Origin: Mobula birostris
Lineage: Eukaryota
Assembly: GCF_030028105.1 (NCBI RefSeq)
Contig: NC_092374.1
Location: forward strand, 178,584,057 to 178,648,056
Direction of reading: 5' to 3'
Length of the DNA stretch: 64,000 nt
Shown piece by piece: positions 105 to 64,000 of this stretch (positions are counted from its first letter, which is position 1; every line of letters starts with the position of its first letter). The notes beneath the pieces are model-generated. The model saw nothing but the letters and a program-made list of their open reading frames with translations, did not search any database and was not told the DNA's origin. Both the position numbers and the translations under genes were made by a program.

Positions 105-380
105 TTGCTCCAGAGGTTCAGGTGTTGAAAAAGAGGCCAACAGCTACTGAGGGCGAGAGTCTGTCATGCATCATCACTCCCTTCTACCCCCGTGCTATCA
201 ATGCCACTTGGCTGAAGAATGGACAGGTTGTCTCCAAGGGCTACGAGGTGACCGTGCTACCAAACTACAATGATACATACTGGATGGAACTAGTCATTGA
301 GCTGCAGGATAATGATACGAACATCTATACCTGTCATGTCAAGCACAGCAGCCTGCCGGGGGCACTGATGGTGCAGGGAG
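105..380 (+). CDS. Gene A, MHC class I alpha3 (C1-set Ig) exon, 276 nt, phase 1/1
   Basis: Acceptor ttcttccctag|TT at 104/105, donor GGAG|gtaggt at 380/381. Encodes VAPEV..LSCIITPFYPRAINATWLKNG..VLPN..YTCHVKHSSLP with the C1-set Cys/Trp/Cys pattern. 276 nt is the usual class I alpha3 exon size. Confidence 0.93.
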
Positions 381-960
381 GTAGGTCATCGTACGGTACA
401 GAATTTGCTTCATTCTGTTGTGGTGGCTCATAAATTCATACAGTACTGAAGGAGGCCATTTGGCTCACCACATACATGCTGACCCTCTGGTGCCAGTCTA
501 TTCCAACCAGTACTTGGTCTGTACTTCGGCCTTCTCTTCCTCGATGATTCAAGTGCTTGTCAGAATTATGATATGAAAATTGATCTTTTGCAACAGCAGT
601 ACAGTGCAAAGACATAAAAGGCGTATGAGCTTAGAACATGGACCAACTCATGAAATTATGATACTGTAGCTATAGGTGAGATTTACTAGCTGGAGGGAAG
701 ACTGCCAGCCCAAGGTGTGTGGATGAGAAGAGTATGTAGGTCTAGACCCAGGTGTGGATTGAAGGGAATAAGCAAAATGGCATTTTGACAGACTAGATGG
801 GCCAAATGGACTGCTTCTGTGCTGTAGTGCTCCATGACTGAAAGATAACATAAATTATAAAATGAAGTAATTAGTGCAAAAATTGGAATAATGAGGTTGT
901 GTTCATGGGTTCATGACTATTCATGAATGGTAGAAGAAAAGAAGATGTTTCTGATTAGTG

Positions 961-2777
961 CAACACACATAAAAGTTGCTGGTGAACGCAGCAGGCCAGG
1001 CAGCATCTCTAGGAAGAGGTGCAGTCGACGTTTCAGGCCGAGACCCTTCGTCAGGACTAACTGAAGGAAGAGTGAGAAAGGGATTTGAAAGTTGGAGGGG
1101 GAGGGGGAGATCCAAAATGATAGGAGAAGACAGGAGGGGGAGGGATAGAGCCAAGAGCTGGACAGGTGATTGGCAAAAAGGATACGAGAGGATCATGGGA
1201 CAGGAGGTCTGGGAAGAAAGACAAGGAGGGCGGGGGGACCCAGAGGATGGGCAAGGGGTATATTCAGAGGGACAGAGGGAGAAAAAGGAGAGTGAGAGAA
1301 AGAATGTGTGTATAAAAATAAGTAACAGATGGGCTACGAGGGGGAGGTGGGGCATTAGCGGAAGTTAGAGAAGTCGACGTTCATGCCATCAGGTTGGAAG
1401 CTGCCCAGACGGAATATAGAATGAAAAGCCTCATCCTGAGAGCAGATGCGGTGGAGATGGAGGAATTGCGAGAAGGGGATGGCATTTTTGCAAGAGACAG
1501 GGTGAGAAGAGGAATAGTCCAGATAGCTGCGAGAGTATCCCCTTCCCGCAATTCCTCCGTCTCTGCCGCATCTGCTCTCAGGATGAGGCTTTTCATTCTA
1601 TGACGAGGGAGATGTCTTCCTTTTTTAAAGAAAGAGGCTTCCCTTCCTCTACTATCAACTCTGCTCTTAAACGCATCTCCCCCATTTCACGTACATCTGC
1701 TCTCACTCCATCCTCCCGCCACCCCACTAGGAATAGGGTTCCCCTGGTCCTCACCTACCACCCCACCAGCCTCCGGGTCCAACATATTATTCTACGTAAC
1801 CTCTGCCACCTCCAACGGGATCCCACCACTAAGCACATCTTTCCCTCCCCGCCTCTCTCTGCATTCCGCAGGGATCGCTCCTTACACAACTCCCTTGTTC
1901 ATTCGTCCCCCCCCATCCCTCCCCACTGATCTCCCTCCTGGCACTTATCCGTGTAAGCGGAACAAGTGCTACACATGCCCTTACACTTCCTCCCTTACCA
2001 CCATTCAGGGTCCCAAACAGTCCTTTCAGGTGAGGCAACACTTCACCTGTGAGTCGGCTGGGGTGATATACTGCGTCTGGTGCTCCCGATGTGGCCTTCT
2101 ATATATTGGTGAGACCCGACGCAGACTGGGAGACCGCTTTGCTGAACACCTACGCTCTGTCCGCCAGAGAAAGCAGGATCTCCCAGTGGCCACACATTTT
2201 AATTCCACATCCCATTCCCATTCTGACATGTCTATCCACGGCTTCCTCTACTGTAAAGATGAAGCCACACTCAGGTTGGAGGAACAACACCTTACATTCC
2301 ATCTGGGTAGCCTCCAACCTGATGGCATGAACATCGACTTCTCTAACTTCCGCTAAGGCCCCACCTCCCCCTCGTACCCTGTCTGTTACTTATTTTTATG
2401 CACACATTCTTTCTCTCACTCTCCTTTTTCTCCCCCTGTCCATCTGAATATACCTCTTGCCCATCCTCTGGGTCCCCCCCCCTTGTCTTTCTCCCCAGAC
2501 CTCCTGTCCCATGATCCTCTCGTATCCCTTTTGTCAATCACCTGTCCAGCTCTTGGCTCCATCCCTCCCCCTCCTGTCTTCTCCTATCATTTTGGATCTC
2601 CCCCTCCCCCTCCAACTTTCAAATCCCTTACTCACTCTTCCTTCAGTTAGTCCTGACGAGGGGTCTCAGCCTGAAACGTCGACTGCACCTCTTCCTAGAG
2701 ATGCTGCCTGGCCTGCTGCGTTCACCAGCAACTTTGATATGTGTTGCTTGAATTTCCAGCATCTGCAGGATTCCTGC
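961..2777 (+). mobile_element. Penelope-like retroelement (RT C-terminus, GIY-YIG endonuclease, 3' region) with an inverted 5' copy; 15-bp TSD
   Basis: ORF 1895-2356 has CxxC and VIYC..C..CGLLYIGETRRRLGDRF.EH (GIY-YIG). TSD TGTTTCTGATTAGTG at 946-960 and 2778-2792. Arms 961-1415/2292-2746 and 1416-1480/1537-1601 are inverted. Confidence 0.9.
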
Positions 2778-3639
2778 TGTTTCTGATTAGTGTCTTCTTT
2801 GTGAGTCCTGTATCTTTTCCCTGATTGCATTAAAGGAGAAGAGGGCATGTCCCAGATGGCAAGGGTCCTGAGTACTGGATGCCACCTTCTTGAAGCACTA
2901 CCGCTTGAAGATGTCTTCGGTGGTGGGGTGGTTTCTGCGCATGATGGAGCTGACTGTGTCAACAATTCTCTGCAGCTTCTTATACTTCGTAGATATCAAA
3001 ATAATTTTTAAACGCTGTGAGAATGTCTGCCTATACCAGCCCCTTAGGCAGAGCATTCCCATCTCCCACTAACCCATTAATTAAAAAAAAATCTTCTCTC
3101 TATTCTCTCTAAATCTCTTAATCCTTGCCTTAAACCTACCTCTACAGTAATAAGCAACTCTGCCATGGGGAAAAGTTTGCTGCTGTTTTATAAAAGAAAT
3201 TAAGCAGGAGCAGTATACAAACTACTGCAGTAAAAAAAAAGCTTTGTTCTTTCAGCATTTTGTACATTTTTCCTTTCAATGCCCCTAACAATTTTGTATA
3301 ATGCCATCAGCTCCTCTCACAACCTCCTCCCATTCAGGGAAATCAAACCCAGCCTCTTCACTGAAACACTGCATCCCAATAAATTCCTGGTGAATCTCCT
3401 GTGTACTCTGTCCCATGCAATCAAATTGTTCCTCTGGGTTGGTGACTGAAAATGCATCAAGTACTTGGGATGTAGCGTAGGTAATGTTTTGTAAAGCTGT
3501 TCCATAATTTCCTTGGTCTTGTATTCTGTGCCCATATTAATGAACACTCGTACCCTGTACACTTTGTTCATCACTATACCTACCTCTTTGACTGACCTGA
3601 TGATGTATCTCCTCAGTAAAGCTGCACCAGAGCTTCACA

Positions 3640-3900
3640 GAACACCATGGTAGTGTAGTTCAGAGTTCAGTTCCAATACCCTCTGTAAGAGTTTGTATGT
3701 TCTCTCCATGAACTGCCTGGATATCCTCTGGCTGCTCCGGTTTCCTCCCATAGTCCACAGACGTACCAGCTAGTGGGTTAATTTGTCATTGTAAATTGCC
3801 CTATGATGAGGCTGGTGTTAAATAGGGGGGTTGTTGGGTGGTGCAGTGCATTGGTCCAGCAGGGGCTGATCTGAACAGTATCTCTAAATAAAACAAATTA
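3640..3900 (+). mobile_element. tRNA-derived SINE (V-SINE/HE1-like), degenerate
   Basis: Core gtttgtatgttctc...gctccggtttcctccca...gggttaatttgtcattgtaaattgccc and an A-rich end; family name assigned from recalled consensus. Confidence 0.6.
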
Positions 3901-5161
3901 TATTTTATGCCCTGATTAATAAATCCTGTAGGCTTTCTTTACCACCCTGTCTATCACTTTGAAAGAGCTGATCAAGTAGCTCCACTCTTCTCTTACACGC
4001 CTCTGAACGTTTCTTTCTTCAAAAAACATGTCCCATGTCCTTGCTGAAAGTTATTATTTACAAGGTTACAGTATCTTCAGATTTTCTCTTGTTTGTGTTC
4101 AGTCGTAAGAAGCAATTATGAGTTATGGGCCAAAGAAACATAATAGACGCTCAAGGAAAGAAACAACTGAGAAGTGATTCGGCCTATGGGTCAAGACCTT
4201 CCTGGCTGAGAAATGACTGATATTCAGAGAAGTCATAGACCCTTACCGAACAAAAACAGGCCCATCTGCACAACTGGTCTATGCCAACCAAAATTCCTAA
4301 CATGGCCCATATACTACCAAACATTTCCTGTCTATCTACTGGTTCCAGTGATTTTTTTTTTGTTTAAAATGTTGTTAATGTAGCTGCCAAAACCATTTTC
4401 TCTTGCATCTCCTTCCCTGTGCTGACAACTTCTGCTTGAGAATGTTGGCCCTCCGGTTTCTATTATATTTTTCACTAATCACCTTAAACCTTTGTCCTAA
4501 AGTTCCTGATGCCCAAATCCTGGGAAAGAGATTGTGCATTCATCCTCTCTATGCTCTTTATGATTTTATACGTTATTCTATATATCTCAACCTCTTACAT
4601 TCAAGGGAAAATAATGCCAAGCTATGCTACTTCCCCTTCTAATTCAAGTGTACCTTTCTTGGCAACATCCTTGAGAATATTTTGTACACCTTTTCCAGTT
4701 TAATGACTTCCTTCCTTTGTCAATATGCATAAGATCACCCCATTCTCCTCAGCTCCAGTGAATAAGACATCGCCCGCACCATACATTCTTTCTTCTTCCC
4801 CCATCTTCTGCTGAGCAGAAGGTACGAAAGCCTGAAAGCACACACTGATGATCAAGGACAGCTTCTATTTTGCTGTTATAACAGTATTGTAGAGTTCCAT
4901 AGTACGGCACGTTTAACCTTTGATGTCACGATCAACCGTATTGTGGCCCTTGCTCCTTACTGTGTGCCTGCTCTCTACTTCCTCTGTAACTGTTACAAGT
5001 TGCTTTGCATTCTGTTATTTTTGCCCCTTGTATTATCTCAATGTGCAATTGTAATGCAATTATCTGTGGATGGCATGCAGTATAAAGATTTTTCAGTGTA
5101 CCTTGGTACATGTGACAACAATATTAAAATATTACCAATTTACCAATCTTTACTTGGTGAG

Positions 5162-5241
5162 TGGGAGCCGGGGAGCCTCGTGGTGCAGGTCCTTTGCTGG
5201 GGCTGATGGCGACACTTACGATGATGATTAAAGTGGTGTAG
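5162..5241 (+). CDS. Gene A, terminal coding (membrane-anchor/GPI-signal-like) exon; exon continues as UTR to 5277 or 5281
   Basis: The first AG after a ~63-nt AG-free stretch is 5160-5161. Phase-1 reading gives (V)GAGEPRGAGPLLGLMATLTMMIKVV-TAG(5239-5241). Homologous to 19777-19853 on the minus strand. Confidence 0.72.
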
Positions 5242-5362
5242 AGGAGCAGCAAGGAGAGAGTCAAGACTTTAGTGCAGGTGGGTAAACACGCAGGTCCTTT
5301 CACTAATCCTGCTTGCTGTCACAGTATTGCTCAACCAATCTCTTCTCGTTTTCCTTTTGCAG

Positions 5363-19552: not shown

Positions 19553-19776
19553 ACTAAGCTTGCTGAGGTGTGCAGTCACTCATCAAAAAAACGTGTTTGA
19601 AGCTGGACCCTGTGTTCAGAACTGTGCTTGAGTTAGAGCCGAATGCTGATCTGCAAAGGAGAAAAGAGAGGAGATTGAATGTACAGTCTAATACTGTCAC
19701 AGCAAGCAGGTTTAACAAAGGCATCTGTATGCTTACCCACCTCCAGTGACGCCTTGGTTCTCTCCTTGCTGCACCT

Positions 19777-19853
19777 CTACATCACTCCAAAGATTATCGC
19801 AAACACAGTCATCAGCCCCAACATAGGACCTGCACCATGGGGCTCACCAACTC
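19777..19853 (-). CDS. Gene B, terminal coding (membrane-anchor/GPI-signal-like) exon; exon continues as UTR to 19741 or 19737
   Basis: Acceptor ctttacttggtggacag|GA; (G)VGEPHGAGPMLGLMTVFAIIFGVM-TAG; donors GAG|gtgggt or TGG|gtaagc. Confidence 0.8.
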
Positions 19854-22800
19854 CTGTCCACCAAGTAAAGATCGGTAAATGTATAAATTATTTTATTATT
19901 GTCACCAGTTACCAGGTACAGTGGAAATACATGGTTTGCATTCCGTCCATACAAATCATTACATCAGGATATTAAGGTTGTACAAGGGAAATCAATAACA
20001 GAATGCAGAGTAATGTATTACTTTTACAGAGGATGTGTGGTGCTAGCTGGCACTAGGATGCAAGACCATTAAAAGTTAGATTGTGAGGTCAGATGCCTAT
20101 CTTACTATGTTTGGGGACCACTCAATTTTCTCACAGGAGCACGACAGAAGTGTTCATTGATCATTGTAGTACATGCCTTCAGGCTTTTGTATCTGTGCCT
20201 GATGGGAGTCGGGAGAAGTGGGGCGGGGGGGGAGCGCGGGGTGCTGGGGAGGGTAGTCCTATGTGGATAGTATTGGAAGATAGGAGAATGGAAGGTTTTT
20301 GAGGAAGGAAGGATGTCATTAGGATGGAAAGGATGCAGAGGAGATTCACAAAGATGGTGCCAGGAATGGAATGCTTGAGATATAAGGAGAGATAAGATAG
20401 GCTGGGATTATTTTCCTGGAGTGTAGGGGGCTGAGTTATAGAGAGAGGTATATAAAATTTTGAGGGGCATAGAGAGAGTGCACAATAATTTTTCAGGGCT
20501 CCTGATGGTATAGGTTTAAGTTAAGAGAGAAAAGATGTAACAGGAACCTGAGTGGCAACATGATGGTCAATTTATGGGTGCCAGAAGAAGTGGTTGAGGC
20601 AGACAAGTTAGCATCTTTTAAAAGATACATCCACCAGTACATGGATCTGAAGGGTTTAGGGAGATATGGGCCAGGATAAATGGGACTTCTTTGAACCGGA
20701 ATCTTGATCGACAAAGGTGTGTTGGGCTGAAGGGTCTGTTTCTCTGCTGCAGAATTCTACGAATCTATGACAATCAAACACCCAACAGCCAGGCAGTGAC
20801 CACTTGACAGTCAGGTCTTCCCCACAGTCCCAATTGCTTCTTAGTTGTTCTTTCTGTTGAGTTCTTACTATATTTCTTTGACCAACAGCTCAACTGCTTC
20901 TGTAACATCTGGTGAGCAGAAGGAACAGATTTAATTCGAGTGATAAAAGAGCACAGTAAATAATAACTTCCAAAATGGAAATGGGATATGTTCTTGGAAT
21001 TAAGAAATTTTCAGAGGTGTGTGAGAAGGAGTGGGGCTACTTGAGCAAGTCATTCAAAGTAGAGGACAAGGTGGTTAAGATAGCCTACAGGATGCTGGAT
21101 TTCATTGATTAGGACATAGAATTCAAGAGAAGGGAACTTATGGTGCAGCTTTATGGTGGAGATTCTTGATTAGGTCTTTCAAATTTGTAAATAGGGTGGT
21201 GAAGGAAGTGTATGAGATACCAATTATCAGTGCATAGAATACAAGGGCATGGGAATTATGGTACAGCTTTATAAAACACCGGTGAGGCTACATTCTGAGT
21301 ATTGTTTACAGTTCTGGTCACCAGAGCAGAGGAGAGATGTGATTGCATTGGACAGAGTGCAGAGGAGATTCGCTGGAATGTGGCTCAGATGAAATGGGAA
21401 GAGAGAATGGCTACACTGGTTTTGTTTTCTTTAGACGGGAGGAGACTGAGGATGGACCTGATGGAGTTATACAGAATTATTAGGGGTGTAGATAGGAAAC
21501 ACATAGAAAATGTTGGAAGAATTTTTAAAAATATATATTATTTCTGTTTTTGCACTATTTTAAAATCTGTTCAATATACATATATATAATTACTGTAGTT
21601 GATTTACTTACTTGTTTTATGTTTTTTCTATATTATCAAGCATTGCATTGTTCTGCTGCTGCTAAGTTAACAAATTTCACAACAGATGCCAGCAACAATA
21701 AACCTGATTCTGATTCTGAAGAGTGCTACAGGTTTTACTTGCTGCAGTTTATGCTTCCACTTCATGTGTTTGCTTGAACAGTAGTAAACCCTTCCCCATA
21801 GTAAAGGTGCCTATAACTCGACGTAGGTTTAAGATAATGACTAAGAGGTTTATAGAGAATCTACAGATGAATACTTTCACCAAGGGCGTGTTGGAGTTGG
21901 GAATAGACTGCCTGAGGAGATGGTGGAGGCAGAAACCGTCATAATTTTCAAGACGTACCTAGATGAGCAGTTGAATCATTAGGTTAAAGAAGGGGACGGG
22001 CCAAGTGTTTATGAGAACTAGAGGGTTTGCATGAATCAGACAGGCCGAAGAGCTTCCTTCTCTGCTGCACATGAGCCACCACAGGCAGAATGAAGCAAAT
22101 TCTGTACCGTACGATGACCTACCTCCCTTCGCCTTTGGCAGGCTGCTGTGCTCGACATGACAAGCATAGATGTTCGGGTCGTTGCCCTGCAGCTCAATGA
22201 CTAGTTCCATCCAATATGTATCATTGTAGTTTGGTAGCACCGTCACCTTGTAGCCCTCAGAGACAACCTGCCCATTCTTCAGCCAAGTAGCCTTGATAGC
22301 TCGGGGGTAGAAGGGAGTGATGATGCACGACAGACTCTCGCCTTCAGTAGCTGTTGGCCTCCTTGTCAACACCTGAGTCTTTGGAGCAACTGGGGAAGAA
22401 TCAAAAATTATGTCACCACCTCAACACAGGCTGATGATACCTTACTGTTATAGACTGAAGTTACAGTGTTCAATGTTGGGATTACTCTCACATCCTTCAC
22501 TGCCTCAGAATGTGATCTGCCTCACTATTACACTCACCATCTAATCTGAAATCAGCCTCCCCAGCCCAAGCTCATGCAGACTACAGACAGAGATTACGTT
22601 CATTCATCGGACAGGTCCAGATCAAGGTCACAGGCACTGTTCCCAATCCAACTGTAGTGCAATATCCCAAATTCAGATCATCCTCAAACTGCAAGATGGA
22701 GAATGCCCTCAGCACAGCAGTGGTGATCAGAAAGTCCCTCACTGCCCCAGACTGGGAGATCAGTCAATGTCTCCATTTGGGAGCGCCCTCACTCAAAGAT

Positions 22801-28800: not shown

Positions 28801-31800
28801 CCACAGGGATCAGTGTTGGGTCCATTGTTATTTGTCATCTATATCAATGATCTGGATGATAATGTGGTAAATTGGATCAGCAAATTTGCTGATGATACAA
28901 AGATTGGAGGTGTAGTAGACAGTGAGGAAGGTTTTCAGAGCCTGCAGAGGGACTTGGACCAGCTGGAAAAATGGGCTGAGAAATGGCAGATGGAGTTTAA
29001 TACAGACAAGTGTGAGGTATTGCACGTTGGAAGGACAAACCAAGGTAGAACATACAGGGTTAATGGTAAGGCACTGAGGAGTGCAGTAGAACAGAGGGAT
29101 CTGGGAAAACAGATAGAAAATTCCCTAAAAGTGGCATCACAGTTAGATAGGGTTGTAAAGAGAGCTTTTGGTACATTGGCCTTTATTAATCAAAGTATTG
29201 AGTATAAGAGCTGGAATGTTATGATGAGGTTGTATAAGGCATTGGTGAGGCCGAATCTGGAGTATTGTGTTCAGTTTTGGTCACCAAATTACAGGAAGGA
29301 TATAAATAAGGTTGAAAGAGTGCAGAGAAGGTTTACAAGGATGTTGCCGGGACTTGAGAAACTCAGTTACAGAGAAAGGTTGAGTAGGTTAGGACTTTAT
29401 TCCCTGGAGCATAGAAGAGTGAGGGGAGATTTGATAGAGGTATATAAAATTATGATGGGTATAGATAGAGTGAATGCAAGCAGGCTTTTTCCACTGAGGC
29501 AAGGGGAGAAAAAAACCAGAGGACATGGGTTAAGGGTGAGGGGGGAAAAGTTTAAAGGGAACATTAGTGGGGGCTTTTTCACACAGAGAGTGGTGGGAGT
29601 ATGGAATGAGCTGCCAGACGAGGTGGTAAATGCGGGTTCTTTTTTAACATTTAAGAATAAATTAGACAGATACATGGATGGGAGGTGTATGGAGGGATAT
29701 GGTCTGTGTGCAGGTCAGTGGGGCTAGGCAGAAAATGGTTCGGCACAGCCAAGAAGGGCCAAAAGGCCTGTTTCTGTGCTGTAGTTTCTATGGTTTCTAT
29801 GGTAATATGGTCTACGCAGGAACTCCTGACTCCTGAAAACTGCTGAATTGCATGTATTTTAAGGTGTAAAAGACCATGCTTGTGCTCACTTTAGCAGAGT
29901 CTTTTAGTGGGCTCTCCATGGTCATGTAAGTAAGTAATTAAACTGAATACTGGGGTCTGTGTCCTTGTTTAATCAGCAATAGTAAATTTCTGTGACACTC
30001 AGAGTAGAGGGGCATCCTTTTAAAAAGGAGATCAGGAAATATTTCTTGAGCCAGAGAGCAGTACATATGTGGAATTCGTTGTTACAGGCAACTTGGCAGC
30101 TGTGGAGGCCACATCTTTACTATATTTAAAGCAGAGATTGATAGATTCTGTATAGTCACGACATGAAGCGATACAGGGAGATGGCAGGACATTGGAGCTG
30201 TGAGGGATAATGGACCAGATGAAATGGTGGAGCTGACTCGATGGGCCAAATGGCCCCATTCTGCTTCTATATCTTATGGTTTTATCAAGTCTAGATGTAC
30301 TCAGTTTAGTTTAGTGCCTTGCCACTAGCCAAATGCTGGCCGCAGATTCAGTCTTCGCTGAAACGCCCAGTGCGCACTGATGCACCCTGATCAAACCACT
30401 TAGAAACAGGAAACAAAGGGTAACCAGAATCCAGAAATACATGAACCCTAAAGTCCCCCAAAAAGAGTCACAACCACGAGCCTCACCGATCAATCCCTGC
30501 ATTGTGGAACCCAAGCCTCCTGCACTTTCCTCCAACAGCAGCTAGTAAAAGGGAGAGGAATACCAGGCAAATGCGGCAGATGGCGCCAAATACCAGCCTG
30601 GCCTCCGCACTTGGCCTCGTCCACTTCAAACTTGCTCAACGCCTCAGCCAGAGAGAAGCAATGGAGCCAATTGTGGGCTTACAGTCCACCTCCAGGCCTG
30701 TAGCCCGTACGCTCCAATTAACTCACTGTTTCAAATTAGGAGATCCCTCATTACTGCAGGTTGGGAAACCCCTAACCATTTTGTTTTCGGAGCTCCTTCT
30801 CATTCCCATATGAGGAGATCCCTCTGCATCTCTGATTGGAAGCTTCCTTACTATCCAGATCTGGAGATCCCTCTCTGTCCCAGATTGGGAACACCATCAA
30901 TTTGTTAGATCATCAAATTGTTCAGTATCCTGATTCATGACAGCCCACACCATCTCGGTCTCAGAGCCCCATAATCGTCTCAGACTGAGGTATCCCTTAT
31001 GTTGCTGTATTGGGAGTTCCCTCACCATCGCAGGATGTTCCACTTGCCTTGCCTTTCCAATGCTTCTTTTCCAAGCTGAACAGCCCTTTGCAAATACCAA
31101 GTGCAGTTACTCTTCGATGCAGTCATGTCAGTGAATCTGAGTTGGCTCAATTGATCATTGAGCATTGCTGGGAAAAGAGCGCCAGAGCATTTCAATGTGT
31201 TCAAATCACAGCTGAACTCTCCGATATCCGGGACGTTGATTTTCAGAATCTCATTGACCGTATCTCCAGATTGTGTGCAGCTCCAGAGTGCCTGTATGTA
31301 GCTGAAGCCTGTAAATTACCAACAGATTAATTAACATTAATAGCTGAAGCTTCCAATACTAGATAATGGTCTGCTAAATACGTAAATGCTATGTGACTAA
31401 GAGGTGCACAAAGTAGTGGGTCACGGTCAGCGACTGTGTACAGTTAAGGCCAAGAGCATGGGGTGAAGTGTCCTATATAGAACATTTGTCAGTGTGTGGC
31501 ACAGATCACAGGGTCTCGAGGAATCAGTAATCAATGTGAGCAACTGTTCAAATGGCAGGGTGGGAGGGGAAAGTTTAAAGAGATTCAATTTGTCATTAAT
31601 GAATGGTAATGTTTTCAAACGTATAGTGAAAAGCATTCGGATTGGTTACATCACAGCTGGTAGGTAAACGCCAAAGCCCTGAAAGCCAAAAGGCTGCGAG
31701 GGTGCTGGATTCAACCAGGCCCATCACAGGCACAGCTCTCCCCATCATTGAGGACATCTTAATTAGCCAGAAAAAGTGGTTCACCTGAGGACTAGGAGAA

Positions 31801-34800: not shown

Positions 34801-35650
34801 TGGGTTTGATTTTCACTGTTTCTCTGAAGAGGTCCGTGGGGAATGAGGACTGGATAATCAGTTTATTTTGAAGGGTCAGAACTTACCCAGAACTTACCCA
34901 GAATTCTTGTAATTGGAGTTAAGGAAGGTAGAGAGCAGAATGGAGATTTGAGAGATTTGAAAGACTTTAAGCTAGATACAACATAATCGGATCTAATAGA
35001 ACATCAAGATATTGGCAATATGCAAGTCACTGTGATACTCAAAGGGTAGTGGAGATCAAAGACACTCACTAATCAATGAGGTGAGTGGCTTCAGATATGT
35101 TGAGAGGAGCTCATGAAGCTGATCGGTTATTTCTTTCTGTTCTTTCCAGTAGTCGGTCGATAAGCCATCTGCGATCCACTGGTACTTGACTTCTACTTCA
35201 TGCAGTGTGTTGTCGTAGTAGTCTATCTGCAAGTCATCGAGCATCCCAATCCTGAAGAAAGCTGGCATTTCGGGAATGCTGATGGATTGGAAGTAGTAAT
35301 ATATCAAGCTGTGTGAGCCTGAGTAAAAGGACAGAGAGAGAGGAGTGTCACAAAACAACAAAGGATGCTCACAATTTATAAGGCACAAATTGGGAGTTTG
35401 ATGGCATACTCGCCACTTGAATGGATTAATACACATCCAAACAGACATCCTACTGGATCAGGCAGCACTCCCACCCCTCTTTATTAGCTCCCCAAACACG
35501 AGCAACCAACACTATGAAAACTTGCTTCACTGCTCTGGTCATTTACAAAATCCTAAGCAGATACTCACTGAAGCCAATCCAACAGAACAACCCAAACCCC
35601 AGCACGAAGGAGGTCAAGGGCAGCAGGGAAACAGGAGCACCAACTCCCAT
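19777..35650 (-). CDS. Gene B, complete non-classical MHC class I heavy-chain gene; join complement(35569-35650, 35070-35318, 31048-31308, 22123-22389, 19777-19853); 311 aa
   Basis: Exon lengths 82+249+261+267+77 = 936 nt = 311 codons plus stop. All introns are phase 1. Order is leader, alpha1, alpha2, alpha3, anchor. No internal stop. Confidence 0.88.
22123..22389 (-). CDS. Gene B, MHC class I alpha3 exon (267 nt)
   Basis: Acceptor ttcttccccag|TT, donor GGAG|gtaggt. About 89% nt identity to 105-380, with a 9-nt in-frame deletion near the 3' end. Confidence 0.93.
23030..25760 (+). mobile_element. Degenerate CR1 (ORF1 SGNH-esterase region, APE, RT start)
   Basis: AVLIGDSI...VCCLP....VHLGTNEMG (23451-23678), WVELRNFKGKKTL (24357), DFQKAFDKV-like end near 25730. 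Confidence 0.85.
25785..26370 (-). mobile_element. Rex1/Babar-type LINE 3' fragment with (catagt)n tail and an AT-rich (aatagt)n microsatellite at 25850-25990
   Basis: ORF 26006-26362 ends PLRCSTERHRKSFLPVAIKLYNSS; tandem repeats visible directly. Confidence 0.75.
26370..28360 (+). mobile_element. Degenerate CR1 (ORF1 end, APE endonuclease, RT pieces)
   Basis: ALYLNARSIQNK...GITELWL...WVEIRN (26742-27161), VMGDFNL (27168-27527). Confidence 0.85.
28385..29803 (+). mobile_element. Young 5'-truncated CR1 with an open 450-aa RT ORF, in gene B intron 3
   Basis: ORF 28375-29727 with YMDFSKAFDK, PQGSVLGP and FADDTK; tail tttctatggtttctatgg. Confidence 0.95.
31048..31308 (-). CDS. Gene B, MHC class I alpha2 exon (261 nt)
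   Basis: Acceptor taatttacag|GC; frame open: SFSYIQALWSC...NCTWYLQRAVQLGKEALERQ, with Q96/C101/C164 equivalents and the typical GKExLER end. Donor is CAAG|gcaagt (GC). Confidence 0.88.
31780..33693 (+). mobile_element. 5'-truncated CR1 in gene B intron 2
   Basis: ORFs 31913-32719 and 32782-33621; close relative of 53500-55457. Confidence 0.92.
35070..35318 (-). CDS. Gene B, MHC class I alpha1 exon (249 nt)
   Basis: Acceptor ccttttactcag|GC, donor ATTA|gtgagt. SHSLIYYY..F..IGMLDDLQIDYYD...QWI....DYW matches the class I alpha1 pattern (SHSLxY, G.vDD.Q...yD, W51, Y59-W60). Confidence 0.92.
35569..35650 (-). CDS. Gene B, leader (signal peptide) exon
   Basis: ATG in context ctataATGG; MGVGAPVSLLPLTSFVLGFGLFCWIGF is hydrophobic; donor TTCA|gtgagt is phase 1; 250-nt intron to alpha1. 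Confidence 0.82.
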
Positions 35651-45954: not shown

Positions 45955-48900
45955 TTTTTTTTGTAATTTATTTTTTATTGAATTTCATCATCAAACATTT
46001 CTATAAGTTGTATTTCATATACTGTACATATTTATCATATAATCATATTTGTCACAAATCTCCGCATAATATTTATCTGAGGTATACACTTACAGAAAAG
46101 AGAGGAAAGAAAGAATAATCGAAAGAAGAAAACTATGTACATAGTAGGGAGTGATCTTTTTTTTTAACAACATATTCATTGACTTGTGAGAATAAAATCA
46201 GGCCTATGAGGTGTTATGTAGTTAAACCAATTTTTCCAGCATGAATAAAATTGTTCCAACTTATGATTAACAGATGCTGTTACCTTCTCTATTTTGTACA
46301 TGTTCATTGTAATTTCCATCCATACGTTTAGAGTTGGGCTGTCCTGTGATAATCTTTTCCCCGGAAAAGTCTTTTTACCAGCCACCAGCAGTACATTCAT
46401 TAAATATTTATCTCTTTTCAACCGTTCTTGAGGTATATACCCAAAGTATATGGTCTTACTCTCTAAGGGTATTTCACATTTAAAGATGTCTTGTAGGGCA
46501 TTATTTATCCCACTCCAGTAGTCTTTGATAACGGGGCATTCCCAGAAAATATGATAATCGTTTGCATTTTGATTTCCACAATTTCTGCAGCAAACAGGGG
46601 GGTTGTTATCATAATGGGATTTCTGTGAGGGTGTAATAAAATATCTTATCAAGTTTTTCCACCTGAACTCCCTCCATTTCTGTGAACTGGTACACTTCCA
46701 TTGATACCTCCATATTATTGTTCAGTCTTCCTCAGATATTATCATCCCTCCTTCCTTCTCCCATTTTGTTTTAATGTATGAAGTTGAATGCATTTTAAGA
46801 TTTGACAAATCCTTATTCATGCTTGAAATGATCATACTACCATTGTCTGAATTATATGCTTTTCTAAACAGCTCTATCAGACACGCACTTGCCTTGGTTA
46901 CATTTTTAACCTTCTTATTAACATACTGTCACATTTGTAAAAGTCTTGTTTTTCTAACGCGTGTTTCTCTTTGAGCATTTCAAAACTGAACAGTGTTCCT
47001 TCTTTCATTATATTGCAAATAGCTGTTATTCCTTTAGCTGTCCAGTCCTTAAATCTAGCATCCAGTTTATTCGGTGTAAAATCCTAGTCATAGGCACACC
47101 ATTTAAGAATCGCAATGTCTCTCTCCGGTTTACATTCTTTTATAATAGTTCTCCATATCTTAAGAGTCAATTTCACCTACGGGTTGTCAATATTATTTAT
47201 GTAACTGTAGGTTGTTATCAGCCAAAATTGCCTGTATGGGGATGGAACGTATCATCTCCTCAATGTTTTTCCATTGTGTGTCATATGATGGGTTGCACCA
47301 GCATATCACAGCTCTCAACTGTGCTGCAAAATAATAATCTCTAAGAGAGGCAGGCCACAGTCCCCCTTTTCCTTGGCTAATTGCAAAGTTTTGAGACAAA
47401 CCCTAGGCCTTTTACCTTGCCATATATATCTTAATAGCATCTTGTTCCTCTCATTGAATTGATTTTGGTTAATCTCTATTGGTAGGGTCTGAAAGAAATA
47501 TAGTAGTCTGGGCAGTATATTCATTTTAATAGATTCAATCCTTGAACTGAGACCAAGAAAAGGGATTAGGTTCCACCTTGTTATATCTTCCTTAACTTTT
47601 TATATATTGGCTGATAATTGCATTCCGATAATTTTGCCAAATCTTTTGGCATAATGATGCCCAAATATTTGACGGACTCTGTTTGCCATGCCTAAGTATA
47701 TCTACTTTCAATTTCTCTTGGTGGACTATAGTTATGTGAAAGTAGTTCGGTTTTATCTATATTGATCTTGTATCCTGCTAATTGGCCATATTGTTCAAAG
47801 GATTGCATCAATTTAGGTAAAGAGACTGTTGGTTGCCCAAGATAGATCAAAATGTCATCCACGTGTAAGGGGGTTTCGTCTTTTATGTCACTGCGTAGGC
47901 TAATTAAAATGGCTTCTTTGTTATGTTATACTTGGGAATGCTTCTTTGTTATGTTAAACGCTGAGCAAGTTCTTGCGCTAGTAGCTTGTTTTGGGTTAGA
48001 TTGCGATAAGAAGATGTTACGAACCAATTGGGATAGTTGTTAGGTTTTTGGTATCTGTAAGATTTGTATGCGCGGGGTTTTGGAGGGAGAAGGCGGGAGA
48101 GAGAGAGAGAGAGACAGAGGATGGACCAGGTGCTGTGATGTCCGCTAACGGGGTCAGACCCCGAGCGGGGCGTTCGGAGAGGAGAGGAGACCCAGACGGA
48201 CTCGTGTGGAGCATCTGGTTGACCACTATTGTTGGTCCCAGGCGGCCGGTCAAGGTGGTCCGAGGGGTTGCAGGGTGAAGAAGAAGGTCCTGAGCTCCAA
48301 CTGTTTGTGTACGAAGTGATTGAACTTTGATAAGTGTGGCGCCTTTTATTTTCCTTTTACATTTTATTCTCTATTAATTATATAGTTCCAGTAATATCTA
48401 TAAACTGTAAATCATTTAATTGTATCTGGTGTATTTGTCTGTTATTTGGGTGGGGTGGGGTACACCACACAATATCCACACAAACTAATTACCCAGTTTG
48501 GCGGGGTCGAGGGCTGTTTCCCTAGACGACAGCGAGCTGAGCGACCCTGAGGTTGGCCGGGGGGCCTACGCACGTAACAGGCCAATTTATGCTCTGTCCC
48601 TTTAATAGTAATTCCCCTGTTATCTTCATTTTGTCTGATGTATTGAGCTAATGGTTCCAGATATAATGCAAAGAGTAGCGGTGACTATTCACAACTCTGT
48701 CTCGTGCCCTTTTCTAGGGTAAAACTATTAGATAAATATCCGTCGATTTTAATCCTGGCAGTAGGATTGTCGTATAGTGCTTGTATAGTTTTAATAATTA
48801 TGTCATGTAGACCAAATCTATGTGAAACTCCATAGAGAAAATTCCAATTAACTAAATCAATTGACTTTTCAGCGTCCATGCTTATCACTATTGCTTCCAT

Positions 48901-51900
48901 TTCATTTTTTTTACATGACCATAATGTGAAGTGTCCTTCGTATATTGTCTTGTGTTTGGTATTGTTGTATGAAAACCTGTCTGATCATTTTGTATCAGTG
49001 TGAGTAGAAACTCTTCTAATCGTTTGGCCGTGATGGAGGTAAATATTCTATAATCCACATTAAGAACAGATATTGGTCTAAATGACCCACATTCCATTTT
49101 ATCCTTGCCTTCTTTCCATATAGCTGAGCTTATCGCCTCCTTCCAGCTGGGTGGCATTTGTGCTTTTCTCAGGGCCCAGATCAGTGTGGGGAGTAAAGCA
49201 GGGATTAACTCACTTCTAAACTCTTCATACCACTCTGCTGTATATCCATCTGATCCTGGTGACTTGCTTAATTTAAGCCTACTAAATGCAGTTTTTAGTT
49301 CAGCTTTAGTTATGTCAGCAGTCATCGTTCTATTTTGTTCTTTGCTTAAAGTGGGTAACTCTAAAGAATTCAGGAAGGTGTCAATTTGGGTTAAGTTTCC
49401 CCCTTGTAACCTTGGAATATAGAGTTTTGTAAAACATTTCAAAAGCTTCATGAATTTCACTTAGCTTATTCTTTTTATCACTTTTGTTCTTGGATCCCTA
49501 ATTCCATGAATTGTATTTTCTGCTCCTTTTTTTTTCAGTTTCCACGCCAGTATTTTCATAGATCTGGATCCACTTTCGTAGTGTCTCTGTTTCAGAAACA
49601 TTAAATTTTTTTCTAATTTCTTGTGTAGCCAAACTATTAATTTCATTCCTAATTTTTAATTGCCTCTAGTATATCCTGTGCCAAACTCAGTTTGTGTTTT
49701 TTTCTAGTTCCTTCAGCTTATTTTGTAATTCCTCTAATGTTCTATTCCTTTTTTTTTCTTATATGAAGATATCACTATAATTTTCCCTCTTAAGACAGCC
49801 TTCAGAGTATCCCATAGAATGGGAGGTGAAACCTCTCCATTATCATTGAATTCTAAGTAAAGACCAATTTCTTTTTTAATTTGTTCCTTAAAATAGGGAT
49901 CACTGAGTAGACATGAATTTAGTTTCCAAATAGTATTCTTTGGTTGTAGGTCAAAATCAACAGATAAATATATAGGTGCATGGTCACTTACATCTATTGT
50001 CCCAATTCCACAGGTGATTATTTTGTCTCTGTCTTTTCCAGATATTATGAAATAGTCTATTCTTGTATATATGGAATGGGGGGCAGAATAATGAATGTAA
50101 TCCCTTCTGTCAGCAAAAATGTCCTTCCATATATCAATTAGTCCAACATCCTCATAAAGAGTGTTAACTTTCTTATGTAAGGACTTTGTTTCATAAGTTT
50201 TCCTATTGGAAGAGTCTAGCTTTGGTTGTAATTGTAAATTTAAGTCTCCCCCACATATCAAGAGACCTTCTGTTTCCGTTACCATAATATTAGTAATTTT
50301 CTGGAGGAAACTAGTATCACTTCCTGGGGGTGCATATATATTCAATAAAGTAACTGGATTTCCACCTATATTCCCCTTACCAGAATATATCTGCCCTCCT
50401 TATCTCCCAATTTGAATACTTCTTCAAAATTTAGCTTACTTGAGATGAGAATAGCAACTCCTATTCTATGTCCTGATTTATATGAGGAAAAAAACAAATT
50501 AGTGAAGCCCATTCTCTTTAATTTTCCATGCTCATTATCACTTAAGTGAATTTCCTGTAAATATACTACATGGGCTTGTTCTTTTTTCATTTTTGATAGA
50601 ATTTTACTGCACTTGACTGGATTCAACAGCCCATTGACATTAAAAGAAATGAATTTTACTTTGTCCTTAGCCATGTGTATTTATCTGTTAGTATATAATT
50701 GAAATTTGCAGAATATAACTCAATCGATCTACTCCCTGAACAAATAAGAGCCAAGAAACGCGAATAATAAAAAAAAAGGTAACGAAGCTGTGCTTCCAAG
50801 GCTGGGGTCTCTAGATGACTCTGGGTTGGGCTAGAAGAAAAGTCTAGCCGTGGGGTATAGTCCCTCCTACCTGTGGGTTGAGGGCCCCCGCTGCAGTACA
50901 TATAAAAGTAAGTTTAAAAAAACTACGTCTATTCCACAGAAATGATTTGCCTGTGTATTCCTCCCGTGTATATATTCTCATTTAGGTGGGGAAAAAGGAA
51001 TGAATAACTGATTTTTTTTTAAATTGAGTAATATAAAAACCACATCATAACACGTATTTCTCGAGATAGGTATATCACCGTCTATTTTTGCTTCTGTTTA
51101 GTTTATCAGCACTTTTAATGTTAGCCAAACCTTATGGCTGTTCTGGAGGTGGTGAGGGTTGTCTTCGGAGAACTCAGTCTCTTCCTAATATTCTTCTCTC
51201 GTCCTGTTCCTGTCCCCTGCTTTCTCGGTTCTCTTACTATTTCCCAAGCAGTTCGGGACAACTGCTCAGCCAGACTTTCCCCTGGTTTGACCACGCTCAT
51301 CGACAGTCCTCGGTTGTTCACATCTGTAGACGCCTGGTACAGTCATATTCCTTCTTGGTAAAATACTCTCAGTTTAGCAGGGTACGGGGTTTGAAACTTA
51401 ATCTTTTTGTCCTTCAATATTCGTTTCCCTTCGGAATACTCCTTCCGTTTCTGTAGGACCGCCAGGGGGTAATCATGATCGAAGTATGTTAACTTCCCGT
51501 TCCAAAAAACCCTCTTCTTACCCCAGGCCCTTCGTAGAATCTCCGCCTTGCTCTCGATTCGGAGAAATTTAAGTACAATGGATCGCGGTTTACTTTGTCT
51601 GTCTCTGGCAGGCCGCTGGGCGAGAGAACGATGTGCCCTTTTTATTTCCATCTCCATATTCGGGGGAATCTCCAGCGCTTCCCGCAGCAGCGTATCTGCA
51701 AAGTCTATCATCGACAATCCCTCCGCTCCTTCGGGAACATTATAAATCCTGATATTTTTCCGTCGCGATCTTCTCTCCTGGTCAAGCAATTTACTTTCCT
51801 GTTGATTTAGTATTTTTATCGTCTTACTTCGTATCTGTTCCACGTTTTGCACGCGATCTTCCACCTTCTCAATTCGAGTCTCAGTCATCGCTATTTTCTG

Positions 51901-52223
51901 ATTGACGTTGGCGAGCTCTGACTTTATATCATTGAGTTGCTGCTTTATATCATTTTGGACTCCACTTATCTCTTCCAGAATCTTCATCATATTTGCCGCT
52001 TCGCCTGCACGAGGCCCGGCTGTACCTCTCTCTTCCATAGGCTCCGCAGTGGGGCTTTCTTTTTAATCTCCATTCTTTCTCCCCATTCTTGCCCCCCCCC
52101 CGCTTATCAATTCAGATGTGTTCGAAAGATCTTAGATTTGATGCATTAACGGGGCAAAATATCCGTTTTTCCGGAGCAGCTGTTGATCTGAACTGCCATT
52201 CTGAACGATGACGTCACCGGAGC
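45955..52223 (-). mobile_element. Full-length L1-clade LINE (ORF1 51343-52038; disrupted ORF2 50674 to ~46176), 17-bp TSD, poly(A) tail
   Basis: TSD CCTCCTCATTCTATTCC at 45938-45954 and 52224-52240; T-run at 45955. ORF1 has a coiled coil plus RSRRKNIRIYNVPEGAEG/RAHRS/PRSIVLKF; ORF2 has APE (SFNVNGL, LQEIHL, GGDLN, RIDY), RT and the C-terminal CxxC..HIFWEC motif. Confidence 0.95.
47864..48570 (+). mobile_element. Solo LTR (Gypsy-like, 707 bp) inserted in the L1 RT; 4-bp TSD
   Basis: CACG at 47860-47863 and 48571-48574; starts TGTAAG, ends CCTACG (CA to CG). Removing it restores L1 HKLACYVDDILIYL. Confidence 0.85.
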
Positions 52224-52729
52224 CCTCCTCATTCTATTCCCATCCTCACTGTCACGTGGAACAGGCAGCAATCCTGAGATTTTAATACTCCTGAGGTCCT
52301 GCTCCTCAGCTTCTTTCCTAACTCCTGTATTCTTTTCTCAGGACTTCGTCCCTTTTCCTTCCTAAATCATTGACACCAATATGTACCACGGCTTCTCTTT
52401 GTTCACCCTCTCTTTTCAGGATATTGTGGACGCGTCCAGAAACATCTCAGACCCTGGCAGCTGGGAGCCATCTGTGTGTATCGGCCTTTGCCCCAACTGA
52501 CTCCCATTGCCTAGAGCGAATAACCATCGACCCCGCCATACAGTGCAAATGCTTTGGTGCGGATACGGTGTAAGGCACCCAATGATCAGCCACGACACAA
52601 ATATCAAACAATATATCAAGTGCGAGTAAAGAACTATGCTTTATAGCAAGTTTTGGTGATGGGTTAGTAGCAACAACTGAAAGAAAAGGTGCCACATAAG
52701 TAACTTATCAGTCTAACACCAGTCATGAA

Positions 52730-55457
52730 AGAAAAGGAGGTGGGGTGGCGTTGCTGGTTAAAGAAGAGATTAACGCAATAGAAAGGAAGGACATAAGCCG
52801 GGAAGATGTGGAATCGATATGGGTAGAGCTGCGTAACACTAAGGGGCAGAAAACGCTGGTGGGAGTTGTGTACAGGCCACCTAACAGTAGTAGTGAGGTC
52901 GGAGATGGTATTAAACAGGAAATTAGAAATGTGTGCAATAAAGGAACAGCAGTTATAATGGGTGACTTCAATCTACATGTAGATTGGGTGAACCAAATTG
53001 GTAAAGGTGCTGAGGAAGAGGATTTCTTGGAATGTATGTGGGATGGTTTTTTGAACCAACATGTCGAGGAACCAACTAGAGAGCAGGCTATTCTGGACTG
53101 GGTTTTGAGCAATGAGGAAGGGTTAATTAGCAATCTTGTCGTGAGAGGCCCCTTGGGTAAGAGTGACCATAATGTGGTGGAATTCTTCATTAAGATGGAG
53201 AGTGACATAGTTAATTCAGAAACAAAGGTTCTGAACTTAAAGAGGGGTAACTTTGAAGGTATGAGACGTGAATTAGCTAAGATAGACTGGCAAATGACAC
53301 TTAAAGGATTGACGGTGGATATGCAATGGCAAGCATTTAAAGGTTGCATGGATGAACTGCAACAAATGTTCATCCCAGTTTGGCAAAAGAATAAATCAAG
53401 GAAGGTAGTGCACCCGTGGCTGACAAGAGAAATTAGGGATAGTATCAATTCCAAAGAAGAAGCATACAAATTAGCCAGAGAAAGTGGCTCACCTGAGGAC
53501 TGGGAGAAATTCAGAGTTCAGCAGAGGAGGACAAAGGGCTTAATTAGGAAGGGGAAAAAAGATTATGAGAGAAAACTGGCAGGGAACATAAAAATGGACT
53601 GTAAAAGCTTTTATAGATATGTAAAAAGGAAAAGACTGGTAAAGACAAATGTAGGTCCCCTACAGACAGAAACAGGTGAATTGATTATGGGGAGCAAGGA
53701 CATGGCAGACCAATTGAATAATTATTTTGGTTCTGTCTTCACTAAGGAGGACATAAATAATCTTCTGGAAATAGTAGGGGACAGAGGACCCAGTGAGATG
53801 GAGGAACTGAGTGAAATACATGTTAGTAGGGAAGTGGTGTTAGGTAAATTGAAGGGATTGAAGGCAGATAAATCCCCAGGGCCAGATGGTCTGCATCCCA
53901 GAGTGCTTAAGGAAGTAGCCCAAGAAATAGTGGATGCATTAGTGATAATTTTTCAAAACTCGTTAGATTCTGGACTAGTTCCTGAGGATTGGAGGGTGGC
54001 TAATGTAACCCCACTTTTTAAAAAGGAGGGAGAGAGAAACCGGGGAATTATAGACCGGTTAGCCTAATGTCGGTGGTGGGGAAACTGCTGGAGTCAGTTA
54101 TCAAAGATGTGATAACAGCACATTTGGAAAGCAGTGAAATTATCGGACAAAGTCAGCATGGATTTGTGAAAGGAAAATCATGTCTGACGAGTCTCATAGA
54201 ATTTTTTGAGAATGTAACTAGTAGAGTGGATAGGGAAGAGCCAGTGGATGTGGTATATTTGGATTTTCAAAAGGCTTTTGACAAGGTCCCACACAGGAGA
54301 TTAGTGTGCAAACTTAAAGCACATGGTACTGGGGGTAAGGTATTGATGTGGATAGAGAATTGGTTAGCAGACAGGAAGCAAAGAGTGGGAATAAACGGGA
54401 CCTTTTCAGAATGGCAGGCGGTGACTAGTGGGGTACCGCAAGGCTCAGTGCTGGGACTCCAGTTGTTTACAATATATATTAATGACTTGGATGAGGGAAT
54501 TAAATGCAGCATCTCCAAGTTTGCGGATGATACGAAGCTGGGTGGCAGTGTTAGCTGTGAGGAGGATGCTAAGAGGATGCAGAGTGACTTGGATAGGTTG
54601 GGTGAGTGGGCAAATTCATGGCAGATGCAATTTAATGTGGATAAATGTGAAGTTATCCACTTTGGTGGCAAAAATAGGAAAACAGATTATTATCTGAATG
54701 GTGGCTGATTAGGAAAAGGGGAGGTGCAACGAGACCTGGGTGTCATTATACACCAGTCATTGAAAGTGGGCATGCAGGTACAGCAGGCGGTGAAAAAGGC
54801 GAATGGTATGCTGGCATTTATAGCGAGAGGATTTGAGTACAGGAGCAGGGAGGTACTACTGCAGTTGTACAAGGCCTTGGTGAGACCACACCTGGAGTAT
54901 TGTGTGCAGTTTTGGTCCCCTAATCTGAGGAAAGACATCCTTGCTATAGAGGAAGTAGAAAGAAGGTTCACCAGATTGATTCCTGGGATGGCAGGACTTT
55001 ATTATGAAGAAAGACTGGATGAACTGGGCTTGTACTCGTTGGAATTTAGAAGATTGAGGGGGGATCTGATTGAAACGTATAAAATCCTAAGGGGATTGGA
55101 CAGGCTAGATGCAGGAAGATTGTTCCCGATGTTGGGGGAGTCCAGAACGAGGGGTCACAGTTTGAGGATAAAGGGGAAGCCTTTTAGGACCGAGATTAGG
55201 AAAAACTTCTTCACACAGAGAGTGGTGAATCTGTGGAATTCTCTGCCACAGGAAACCGTTGAGGCCAGTTCATTGGCTATATTTAAGAGGGAGTTAGATA
55301 TGGCCCTTGTGGCTACGGGGATCAGGGGGTATGGAGGGAAGGCTGGGGCAGGGTTCTGAGTTGGATGATCAGCCATGATCATAATAAATGGTGGTGCAGG
55401 CTCGAAGGGCCGAATGGCCTACTCCTGCACCTATTTTCTATGTTTCTATGCTTCTAT
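52730..55457 (+). mobile_element. CR1 ORF2 (APE C-terminus and RT) with 3' tail
   Basis: ORFs 52745-54067, 54067-54708 and 54724-55359; tail ttctatgtttctatg. Confidence 0.95.
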
Positions 55458-62750: not shown

Positions 62751-64000
62751 CCATAGAAACCATAGAAACTACAGCACAGAAACAGGCCTTTTGGCCCTTC
62801 TTGGCTGCGCCAATCCATTTTCTGCCTAGTCCCACTGACCTGCACACGGACCATATCCCTCCATACACCTCCCATCCATGTATCTGTCCAATTTATTCTT
62901 AAATGTTAAAAAAGAACCCGCATTTACCACCTCGTCTGGCAGCTCATTCCATACTCCCACCACTAGTGAAGAAGCCCCCACTAATGTTCCCTTTAAACTT
63001 TCCCCCCCCCTCACCCTTAACCCATGTCCTCTGGTTTTTTTCTCCCCTTGCCTCAGTGGAAAAAGCCTGCTTGCATTTACTCTATCTATACCCATTATAA
63101 TTTTATATACCTCTATCAAATCTCCCCTCATTCTTCTACGCTCCAGGGAATAAAGTCCTAACCTATTCAACCTTTCTCTGTAACTGAGTTTCTCAAGTAC
63201 CGGCAACATCCTTGTAAACCTTCTCTGCAATCTTTCAACCTTCTTTATATCCTTCCTGTAATTTGGTGACCAAAACTGAACACAATACTCCAGATTCGGC
63301 CTCACCAATGCCTTATACAACCTCATAATAACATTCCAGCTCTTATACTCAATACTTTGATTAATAAAGGCCAATGTACCAAAAGCTCTCTTTAAGACCC
63401 TATCTCCCTGTGACGACACTTTTAGGGAATTTTGTATCTGTATTCCCAGATCCCTCTGTTCCACTGCACTCCTCAGTGCCTTACCATTAACCCTGTATGT
63501 TCTACCTTGGTTTGTCCTTCCAACGTGCAATACCTCACACTTGTCAGTATTAAACTCCATCTGCCATTTTTCAGCCCATTTTTCCAGCTGGTCCAAGTCC
63601 CTCTGCAGGCTCTGAAAACCTTCCTCACTGTCTACTACACCTCCAATCTTTGTATCATCAGCAAATTTGCTGATCCAATTTACCACAATATCATCCAGAT
63701 CATTGATATAGATGACAAATAACAATGGACCCAGCACTGATCCCTGTGGCACACCACTAGTCACAGGCCTCCACTCAGAGAAGCAGTTCTCTACCACCAC
63801 TCTCTGGCTTCTTCCATTGAGCCAATGTCTAATCCAATTTACCACCTCTCCATGTACACCTAACGACTGAATTTTCCTGACTAACCTCCCATGCGGGACC
63901 TTGTCGAAGGCCTTACTGAAGTCCATGTAGACAATATCCACTGCCTTCCCTTCATCCACTTTCCTGGTAACCTCCTCGAAAAACTCCAACAGATTGGTCA
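62751..64000 (-). mobile_element. Young CR1 RT 3' part, runs off the window
   Basis: ORF 62826-63989 is nearly identical to 28560-29727; tail (catagaaac)n at 62751-62770. Confidence 0.95.

Follow-up and report, generated by a model that had tools for sequence, protein, structure and literature searches.

Genes A and B, which converge tail to tail in the 64,000-nucleotide window of Mobula birostris DNA analysed here (A on the plus strand, B on the minus strand), are two old paralogues of UFA, a nonclassical MHC class I lineage of elasmobranchs, and in both of them the last coding exon stops directly after a short hydrophobic run, with zero cytoplasmic residues encoded beyond it. UFA as a gene family is already known; its GPI-signal-like end is a prediction made from sequence. 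We consider GPI anchoring the best explanation of this end, a well-supported and probable reading, and it appears that the tail-less state arose a single time, before sharks and rays separated.

The assignment to UFA is based on sequence and fold. The best PDB match of gene B is 8gm8 (phmmer E 6.5e-62), whose title reads 'Crystal structure of shark nonclassical MHC class I, UFA' and whose chain comes from the nurse shark (Ginglymostoma); the UGA structure 9ch4 follows at 5.8e-29 and other class I molecules at 1e-20 or weaker. Foldseek with the AlphaFold model of gene B (pLDDT 69, class I fold) also places 8gm8 at rank 1 (E 1.3e-26, 40% identity). Since 8gm8 is the top match by both routes, genes A and B are UFA. 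Pfam assigns PF07654 to alpha3 and PF00129 to alpha1, the latter at E 5.4e-6, just below the gathering score for a single exon. The nurse shark protein, about 40% identical to gene B and in the same clade as genes A and B, likewise has a shorter helix region in alpha2 and no longer has the anchors for the peptide termini. Of the eight classical class I residues that hold the peptide termini, only Y7 and Y59 are retained; the Y84/N86 segment is deleted, and T143, K146, W147, Y159 and Y171 are replaced. The earlier suggestion that the molecule might not be a peptide presenter fits this loss. A search with the alpha3 exon against 1.84 billion representative proteins, followed by two word-index searches, returned a family of compact proteins of 305-321 aa, all from elasmobranchs. 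The family is found in rays and sharks alike (17 species, ten orders), the batoids being Mobula birostris, M. hypostoma, Hemitrygon akajei, Hypanus sabinus, Pristis pectinata, Narcine bancroftii, Amblyraja radiata and Leucoraja erinacea, and the sharks Cetorhinus, Carcharodon, Mustelus, Pristiophorus, Heterodontus, two Chiloscyllium species, Heptranchias and Ginglymostoma. An identity with UEA, which we take to be a shark-only lineage and hence unlike the present family, was rejected, because the family occurs in rays and matches the UFA structure.

Two papers describe UFA, a lineage that sharks and rays share, as CD1-like, lipid-binding and linked to the MHC, one from unpublished data (PMC10751288) and one from a personal communication (PMC12562908); the window yielded no framework genes. 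An independently evolved GPI-linked class I family in a cartilaginous fish, as the earlier note had it, therefore needs rewording: the independence from the mammalian molecules stands, but the family is not new, UFA having already been named and crystallised (8gm8). For the further proposal of a stress or NK-type ligand we found no evidence at all, the literature pointing instead to the CD1-like, lipid-binding UFA (PMC10751288, PMC12562908). Our literature search returned no paper citing 8GM8 or detailing UFA, and nothing on GPI in cartilaginous-fish nonclassical class I; the UFA anchor is mentioned in no searchable paper, and the primary UFA paper, which lies outside that search, may cover it.

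The exons of gene B (alpha1, alpha2, alpha3 and anchor) are all open and intact within the window, and the gene is identical from alpha1 to the C-terminus to the RefSeq protein XP_072113437.1 (P0161, Mobula birostris). On the minus strand, alpha1 occupies 35070..35318, matching the RefSeq model, and alpha2 31048..31308. The alpha2 donor at 31046-31047 is GC rather than GT (GC-AG, AAG/gcaagt); a nearby GT would break the frame, and the RefSeq protein agrees with the GC-AG splice. The alpha3 exon, a C1-set Ig domain, lies at 22123..22389 and ends in phase 1, and the last coding exon, the former transmembrane exon, at 19741..19853, where it encodes G285 (split) to M309, the stop and 36 nt of 3'UTR. 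RefSeq UFA proteins begin with a typical leader (signal peptide). The leader of the RefSeq gene B model, MESWSGPVSLLVTALSLCSVAGQQAG, was found nowhere in the window, including the 28 kb upstream of alpha1, which would mean a very long intron 1 or a RefSeq model that has taken its leader from a neighbour. A leader-like exon, open but diverged and unused by RefSeq, sits at 35569..35650 (minus strand), 250 bp upstream of alpha1; it is signal-peptide-like and in the right phase.

Gene A enters the window with its alpha3 exon (105..380, plus strand); its alpha1 and alpha2 exons are located before the window start. Its alpha3 and anchor exons are identical to the C-terminal half of the fused model XP_072115050.1 (P0186), and from the way P0186 ends, ...MVQGVGAGEPRG..., the acceptor of gene A must be the AG at 5160-5161. 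This 581-aa model joins two neighbouring, nearly identical A-type UFA copies, of which gene A is the second; the fusion is likely an annotation artefact of tandem duplication.

Read in phase 1 from the alpha3 donor at 22123, the last exon of gene B (19853-19741, acceptor acAG) gives (G)VGEPHGAGPMLGLMTVFAIIFGVM and then TAG, that is, (G)VGEPHGAGP followed by the 15-residue hydrophobic run MLGLMTVFAIIFGVM (19780..19824) and the stop at 19777..19779. In gene A the last coding exon (5162..5277), whose phase fits the alpha3 donor at 380, reads (V)GAGEPRGAGPLLGLMATLTMMIKVV and then TAG, that is, (V)GAGEPRGAGP followed by LLGLMATLTMMIKVV, a run of 15 residues (5194..5238) with a Lys at -3, the stop at 5239..5241 and 36 nt of 3'UTR. 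The remaining two frames of the anchor exon are closed. In an alignment the two TAGs occupy identical columns, and in both genes a small-residue triplet, G-V-G or G-A-G, starts 10 residues before the run. The earlier note had described exactly this, a stop at the same position in both genes right after a short hydrophobic segment, the triplet and the missing tail, and reading the exons bears it out in every detail; its span, 19737-19853, is the gene B anchor exon plus 4 intron bases. RefSeq models use the identical anchor exon and stop.

Beyond the stop, the 36 bases at 19741..19776 in gene B would read RCSKERTKASLE and those at 5242..5277 in gene A RSSKERVKTLVQ, each ending at a GT donor (gtgggtaa) that opens a short intron (19651..19740 in gene B, 5278..5362 in gene A) followed by a further exon. 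That exon starts at 5363 in gene A, and in gene B the portion aligning with skate mRNA covers 19559..19650, all of it 3'UTR. Since the post-stop codons resemble the start of a class I cytoplasmic tail, we regard the exon as a former transmembrane exon cut by a stop and the post-stop stretch as the remnant of juxtamembrane cytoplasmic codons, now 3'UTR. Between A and B the anchor exon has pN 0.26 and pS 0.30 over 75 coding bases, a short sequence in which residue identity appears weakly constrained.

The stop is conserved well beyond the manta. All 29 complete UFA C-termini, from the 17 species, end at the same place, a conserved Pro being followed by 13-17 residues with little or no charge and then by the stop, a constancy that is not chance. 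They cover four batoid orders (Myliobatiformes, Rhinopristiformes, Rajiformes, Torpediniformes) and six shark orders (Lamniformes, Carcharhiniformes, Orectolobiformes, Heterodontiformes, Pristiophoriformes, Hexanchiformes). A sense codon with a full tail, which the earlier note had named as evidence against its reading, occurs in none of the 29, and the stop position it proposed to follow in other rays and sharks is kept in all 17 species, the nucleotide-level comparison being that with skate mRNA contigs. No member of the UFA hit lists (length window at most 1.75 times the query) and no within-cluster RefSeq isoform has a cytoplasmic tail. The RefSeq isoforms vary at the N-terminus or by skipped exons, and only two from Narcine bancroftii, X2 and X3 (P0169, P0188), have short hydrophilic sequences in place of the hydrophobic end; these could be soluble forms produced by alternative splicing.

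In a maximum-likelihood tree of the ectodomain, for which the tail columns were removed, all tail-less proteins fall on one side of a branch with SH-aLRT 99, so that one change of state suffices, and the nearest relatives outside the UFA clade, including UGA, have a transmembrane segment and a tail. Within the clade the gene tree follows the shark/batoid split. On this tree the tail-less end would have arisen once, before the shark-ray split. Genes A and B represent two types of end, ...MMIKVV in gene A and its Hemitrygon and Hypanus orthologues, and ...IIFGVM in gene B. The A-type/B-type split precedes that between Pristis and the Myliobatiformes (moderate support, 86), and the idea that A and B are recent duplicates was rejected, since their divergence is older than the branching of Pristis.

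What kind of anchor this end provides can be approached through the published rules for GPI signals. Under these rules omega and omega+2 are small and omega+1 is anything but Pro; a hydrophilic spacer, 8-12 residues long, then leads to a terminal stretch of 15-20 hydrophobic ones (PMC10491789). In gene B the best omega candidate, G285-V286-G287 (19846..19853, minus strand, the first base of G285 being 22123 in the alpha3 exon), lies 24 residues from the end, with an omega+1 that is not Pro and a small omega+2; gene A offers G-V-G or G-A-G. G285 is nearly invariant in the family alignment, and at least one rule-compliant omega/omega+2 triplet occurs 22-28 residues from the end in each of the 14 sequences scanned. 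With omega at G285 the spacer, EPHGAGP, has 7 residues, just below the quoted 8-12 (PMC10491789), and in other species it has 7-10. The candidate sits only 2-3 residues past the Ig domain, and in the AF2 model of gene B residue 280 and those after it have pLDDT < 50, as a flexible linker plus signal should. Apart from the slightly short spacer, the GPI-signal layout put forward in the earlier note matches the published rules as a sequence pattern (PMC10491789).

The hydrophobic segment itself is marginal. On the Hessa scale, the best 19-mer of UFA proteins scores +1.2 to +5.8 kcal/mol (gene B about +2.1, gene A about +4.7), with the skates at about 0, as against -1.3 to -4.3 kcal/mol for six tailed class I-like proteins, including the UGA-lineage protein P0137 (about -3); these values are approximate, the hydrophobicity and omega scores, including the Hessa values behind them, being crude re-implementations of our own. 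Window-9 Kyte-Doolittle sums counted from omega are 13.5-31 in UFA and overlap those of proven GPI signals, 17.7-39.6 (PMC9520029). A charge 2-3 positions before the end occurs in several members, K in the gene A type and R or E in some sharks.

The same end could instead stay uncleaved, making UFA a tail-less type I membrane protein held by a short transmembrane anchor, an arrangement that we judge unlikely although it deserves more weight than the other alternatives. It would agree with the descent of the exon from a true transmembrane exon, as indicated by the basic post-stop codons and the donor site, and the skate versions, at about 0 kcal/mol over 19 residues, are hydrophobic enough to remain membrane-spanning. 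However, most members have only the 13-17 uncharged residues after the conserved Pro, at +1 to +6 kcal/mol and with no flanking positive charge, whereas tailed class I molecules, including UGA, have segments of 19-25 residues at -1 to -4, and small-residue omega candidates are conserved at the right distance. GPI anchoring is thus a well-supported prediction, given the marginal hydrophobicity compared with true class I anchors, rather than a demonstrated fact.

Gene B shows signs that its own copy could be impaired. It lacks 9 bases, encoding three residues (L-M-V), of alpha3 strand G at 22123-22135 (minus strand; ...SSLPKA---KGGVG). These residues are present in all other UFA family members, save that the Mobula hypostoma orthologue P0184 has the same deletion, and the AF2 model of gene B has no strand past 270-276. 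Together with the absence of the RefSeq leader exon from the window, this deletion suggests that the gene B copy may be compromised. One could therefore read the stop as a pseudogenising truncation common to two decaying copies, whose product is degraded or never made, a reading that would also draw on the diverged local leader exon and on the merging of gene A with its neighbour by RefSeq. Against this, none of the upstream exons is interrupted, the stop persists at its place in 17 species on both sides of the shark-ray split with the ectodomains intact, skate transcripts occur in many sequencing runs, and the nurse shark member folds and was crystallised. We consider such a non-functional truncation improbable, clearly more so than an uncleaved membrane anchor.

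Transcripts from skates show how the exon is used. Two intron-less skate contigs from sequencing runs (L001, L002) carry the TAG at the homologous position, and their protein falls in the same 90%-identity cluster as a Leucoraja erinacea RefSeq protein, a cluster of 42 member sequences from many runs. Both contigs join the post-stop sequence to the next exon at a site homologous to the manta junction, that of gene B being spliced in this way in L001. A cDNA with a different anchor exon, the possibility raised in the earlier note, is not what the skate contigs show; they use the same exon and TAG. The last exon junction lies 36 nt past the stop in the manta and about 42 nt in the skate. A distance of about 50 nt or less from the stop to the last junction spares a transcript from nonsense-mediated decay, and the manta junction, 36 nt after the stop, is close enough to avoid it. 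The post-stop bases of manta and skate are homologous, yet a 5-nt indel follows directly after the stop, leaving no conserved post-stop reading frame, which argues against programmed read-through; read-through as the main explanation was rejected on this ground. That a tailed isoform is also made, by TAG read-through or an alternative exon, so that the tail-less form would be one of two anchors, is very improbable: the recognisable homology of the post-stop sequence and the short in-frame extensions (17 aa in gene B, 23 aa in gene A) could speak for it, but the indel shifts the frame between skate and manta, the extensions are unlike in length and sequence, and no RefSeq isoform or database member examined has a tail.

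GPI anchoring of UFA could have come about as follows. In the common ancestor of sharks and rays, a class I transmembrane exon would have gained a stop at the membrane/cytoplasm boundary, and what remained of the exon would serve as a GPI-attachment signal, in which a small-residue omega site, most likely G285 in gene B, is followed by a brief spacer rich in Gly and Pro and by a marginal hydrophobic segment of 15 residues. We infer that, after translocation into the ER, GPI transamidase would remove roughly the last 24 residues and attach the heavy chain (alpha1-alpha3), presumably together with beta2-microglobulin, to the GPI lipid. UFA would then reside in the outer leaflet without a cytoplasmic sorting signal, and the former cytoplasmic codons and their intron would persist as 3'UTR. 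The crystallised chain of 8gm8 ends at ...ALRVT, before the anchor region, and is thus silent on anchoring.

A related arrangement is found in the mouse. In the class I gene Qa-2 (Q7/Q9) a stop shortens the transmembrane exon and leaves vestigial cytoplasmic exons behind it; the product has a GPI anchor, and a soluble splice form exists. The manta UFA genes share this gene anatomy, and the Narcine isoforms without the hydrophobic end could parallel the soluble form. Qa-2 binds peptides, and is young and species-restricted; it is mammalian and of independent origin, whereas the UFA stop predates the shark-ray split. MICA*008 and the ULBPs are not known to pair with beta2-microglobulin, and the ULBPs lack an alpha3 domain. 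MICA*008, ULBP2 and ULBP3 are class I-like and GPI-anchored, as proposed for UFA, but they are NKG2D stress ligands and not UFA orthologues, and nothing in this analysis ties UFA to NK receptors. Furthermore MICA*008, which is GPI-anchored through a truncating mutation in the transmembrane region (PMC10316631), is an allele, whereas the UFA truncation is lineage-wide. Because the tail-less state is confined to one elasmobranch UFA branch whose nearest relatives have a transmembrane segment and a tail, UFA is not a member of the Qa-2, MILL, ULBP, RAE-1 or MICA*008 families and would only work alike. The GPI-signal-like layout of UFA, which in silico follows the published rules, is kept lineage-wide and is transcribed in a skate, arose independently of its mammalian counterparts.

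As for CD1, its isoforms belong to the type I membrane proteins; the tail of most of them bears a tyrosine-based motif for endosomal sorting, and CD1 trafficking depends on the tail. As UFA has no tail, any endosomal sampling by UFA would have to differ from that of CD1, to which it is reported to be similar in its binding groove and in binding lipid (PMC10751288, PMC12562908). A second CD1-like elasmobranch class I lineage has been described in shark UGA (9ch4; PMC12562908), represented here by P0137, nearly identical to the 9ch4 structure (E 1e-138). UGA resembles UFA in domain plan, but it has retained an ordinary transmembrane segment, at about -3 kcal/mol, and behind it a basic tail in the cytoplasm, both of which UFA lacks; the basic tail of P0137 is without an obvious tyrosine motif, and the protein offers a natural control for UFA. 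With CD1 trafficking being tail-dependent and UFA CD1-like, tail-less UFA and its tailed sister lineage UGA form a direct, testable contrast, through which one could learn how early jawed vertebrates arranged the presentation of lipid antigens.

To our knowledge, GPI-anchored MHC class I-like molecules have so far been mammalian only (Qa-2, ULBP/RAE-1, MILL, MICA*008). If the prediction holds, elasmobranchs would have reached the same solution independently and through the same kind of genetic change, a stop codon within the transmembrane exon, and kept it lineage-wide. We put at about even the chances that UFA is the oldest GPI-anchored MHC-like lineage known, its anchor fixed once before the shark-ray split and kept in every copy, a tail-less CD1-like lipid binder in the outer leaflet for several hundred million years. 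Lipid loading by UFA would then happen either on the surface or along the route by which GPI proteins recycle, and the molecule could be released in soluble form; escape from nonsense-mediated decay would be what keeps the 3'UTR intron so close (36-42 nt) behind the stop.

Two further features of the family and the locus were seen. UFA is described as single or low copy (PMC12562908), as against at least five or six distinct UFA proteins in Mobula birostris and in Hemitrygon akajei. In several stingray copies (P0163-P0166, P0168) the extra pair of alpha2 cysteines is reduced to one residue or gone altogether; in P0166 and P0168 the conserved C164 is missing too. In the window, apparent retroelements fill introns and flank on both strands, at 381-5161 and at ~47000-64000, with long open frames resembling reverse transcriptase, endonuclease and integrase, for example at 52700-54064 and 61010-62899 on the plus strand and at 62829-63998 and 56444-58456 on the minus strand.
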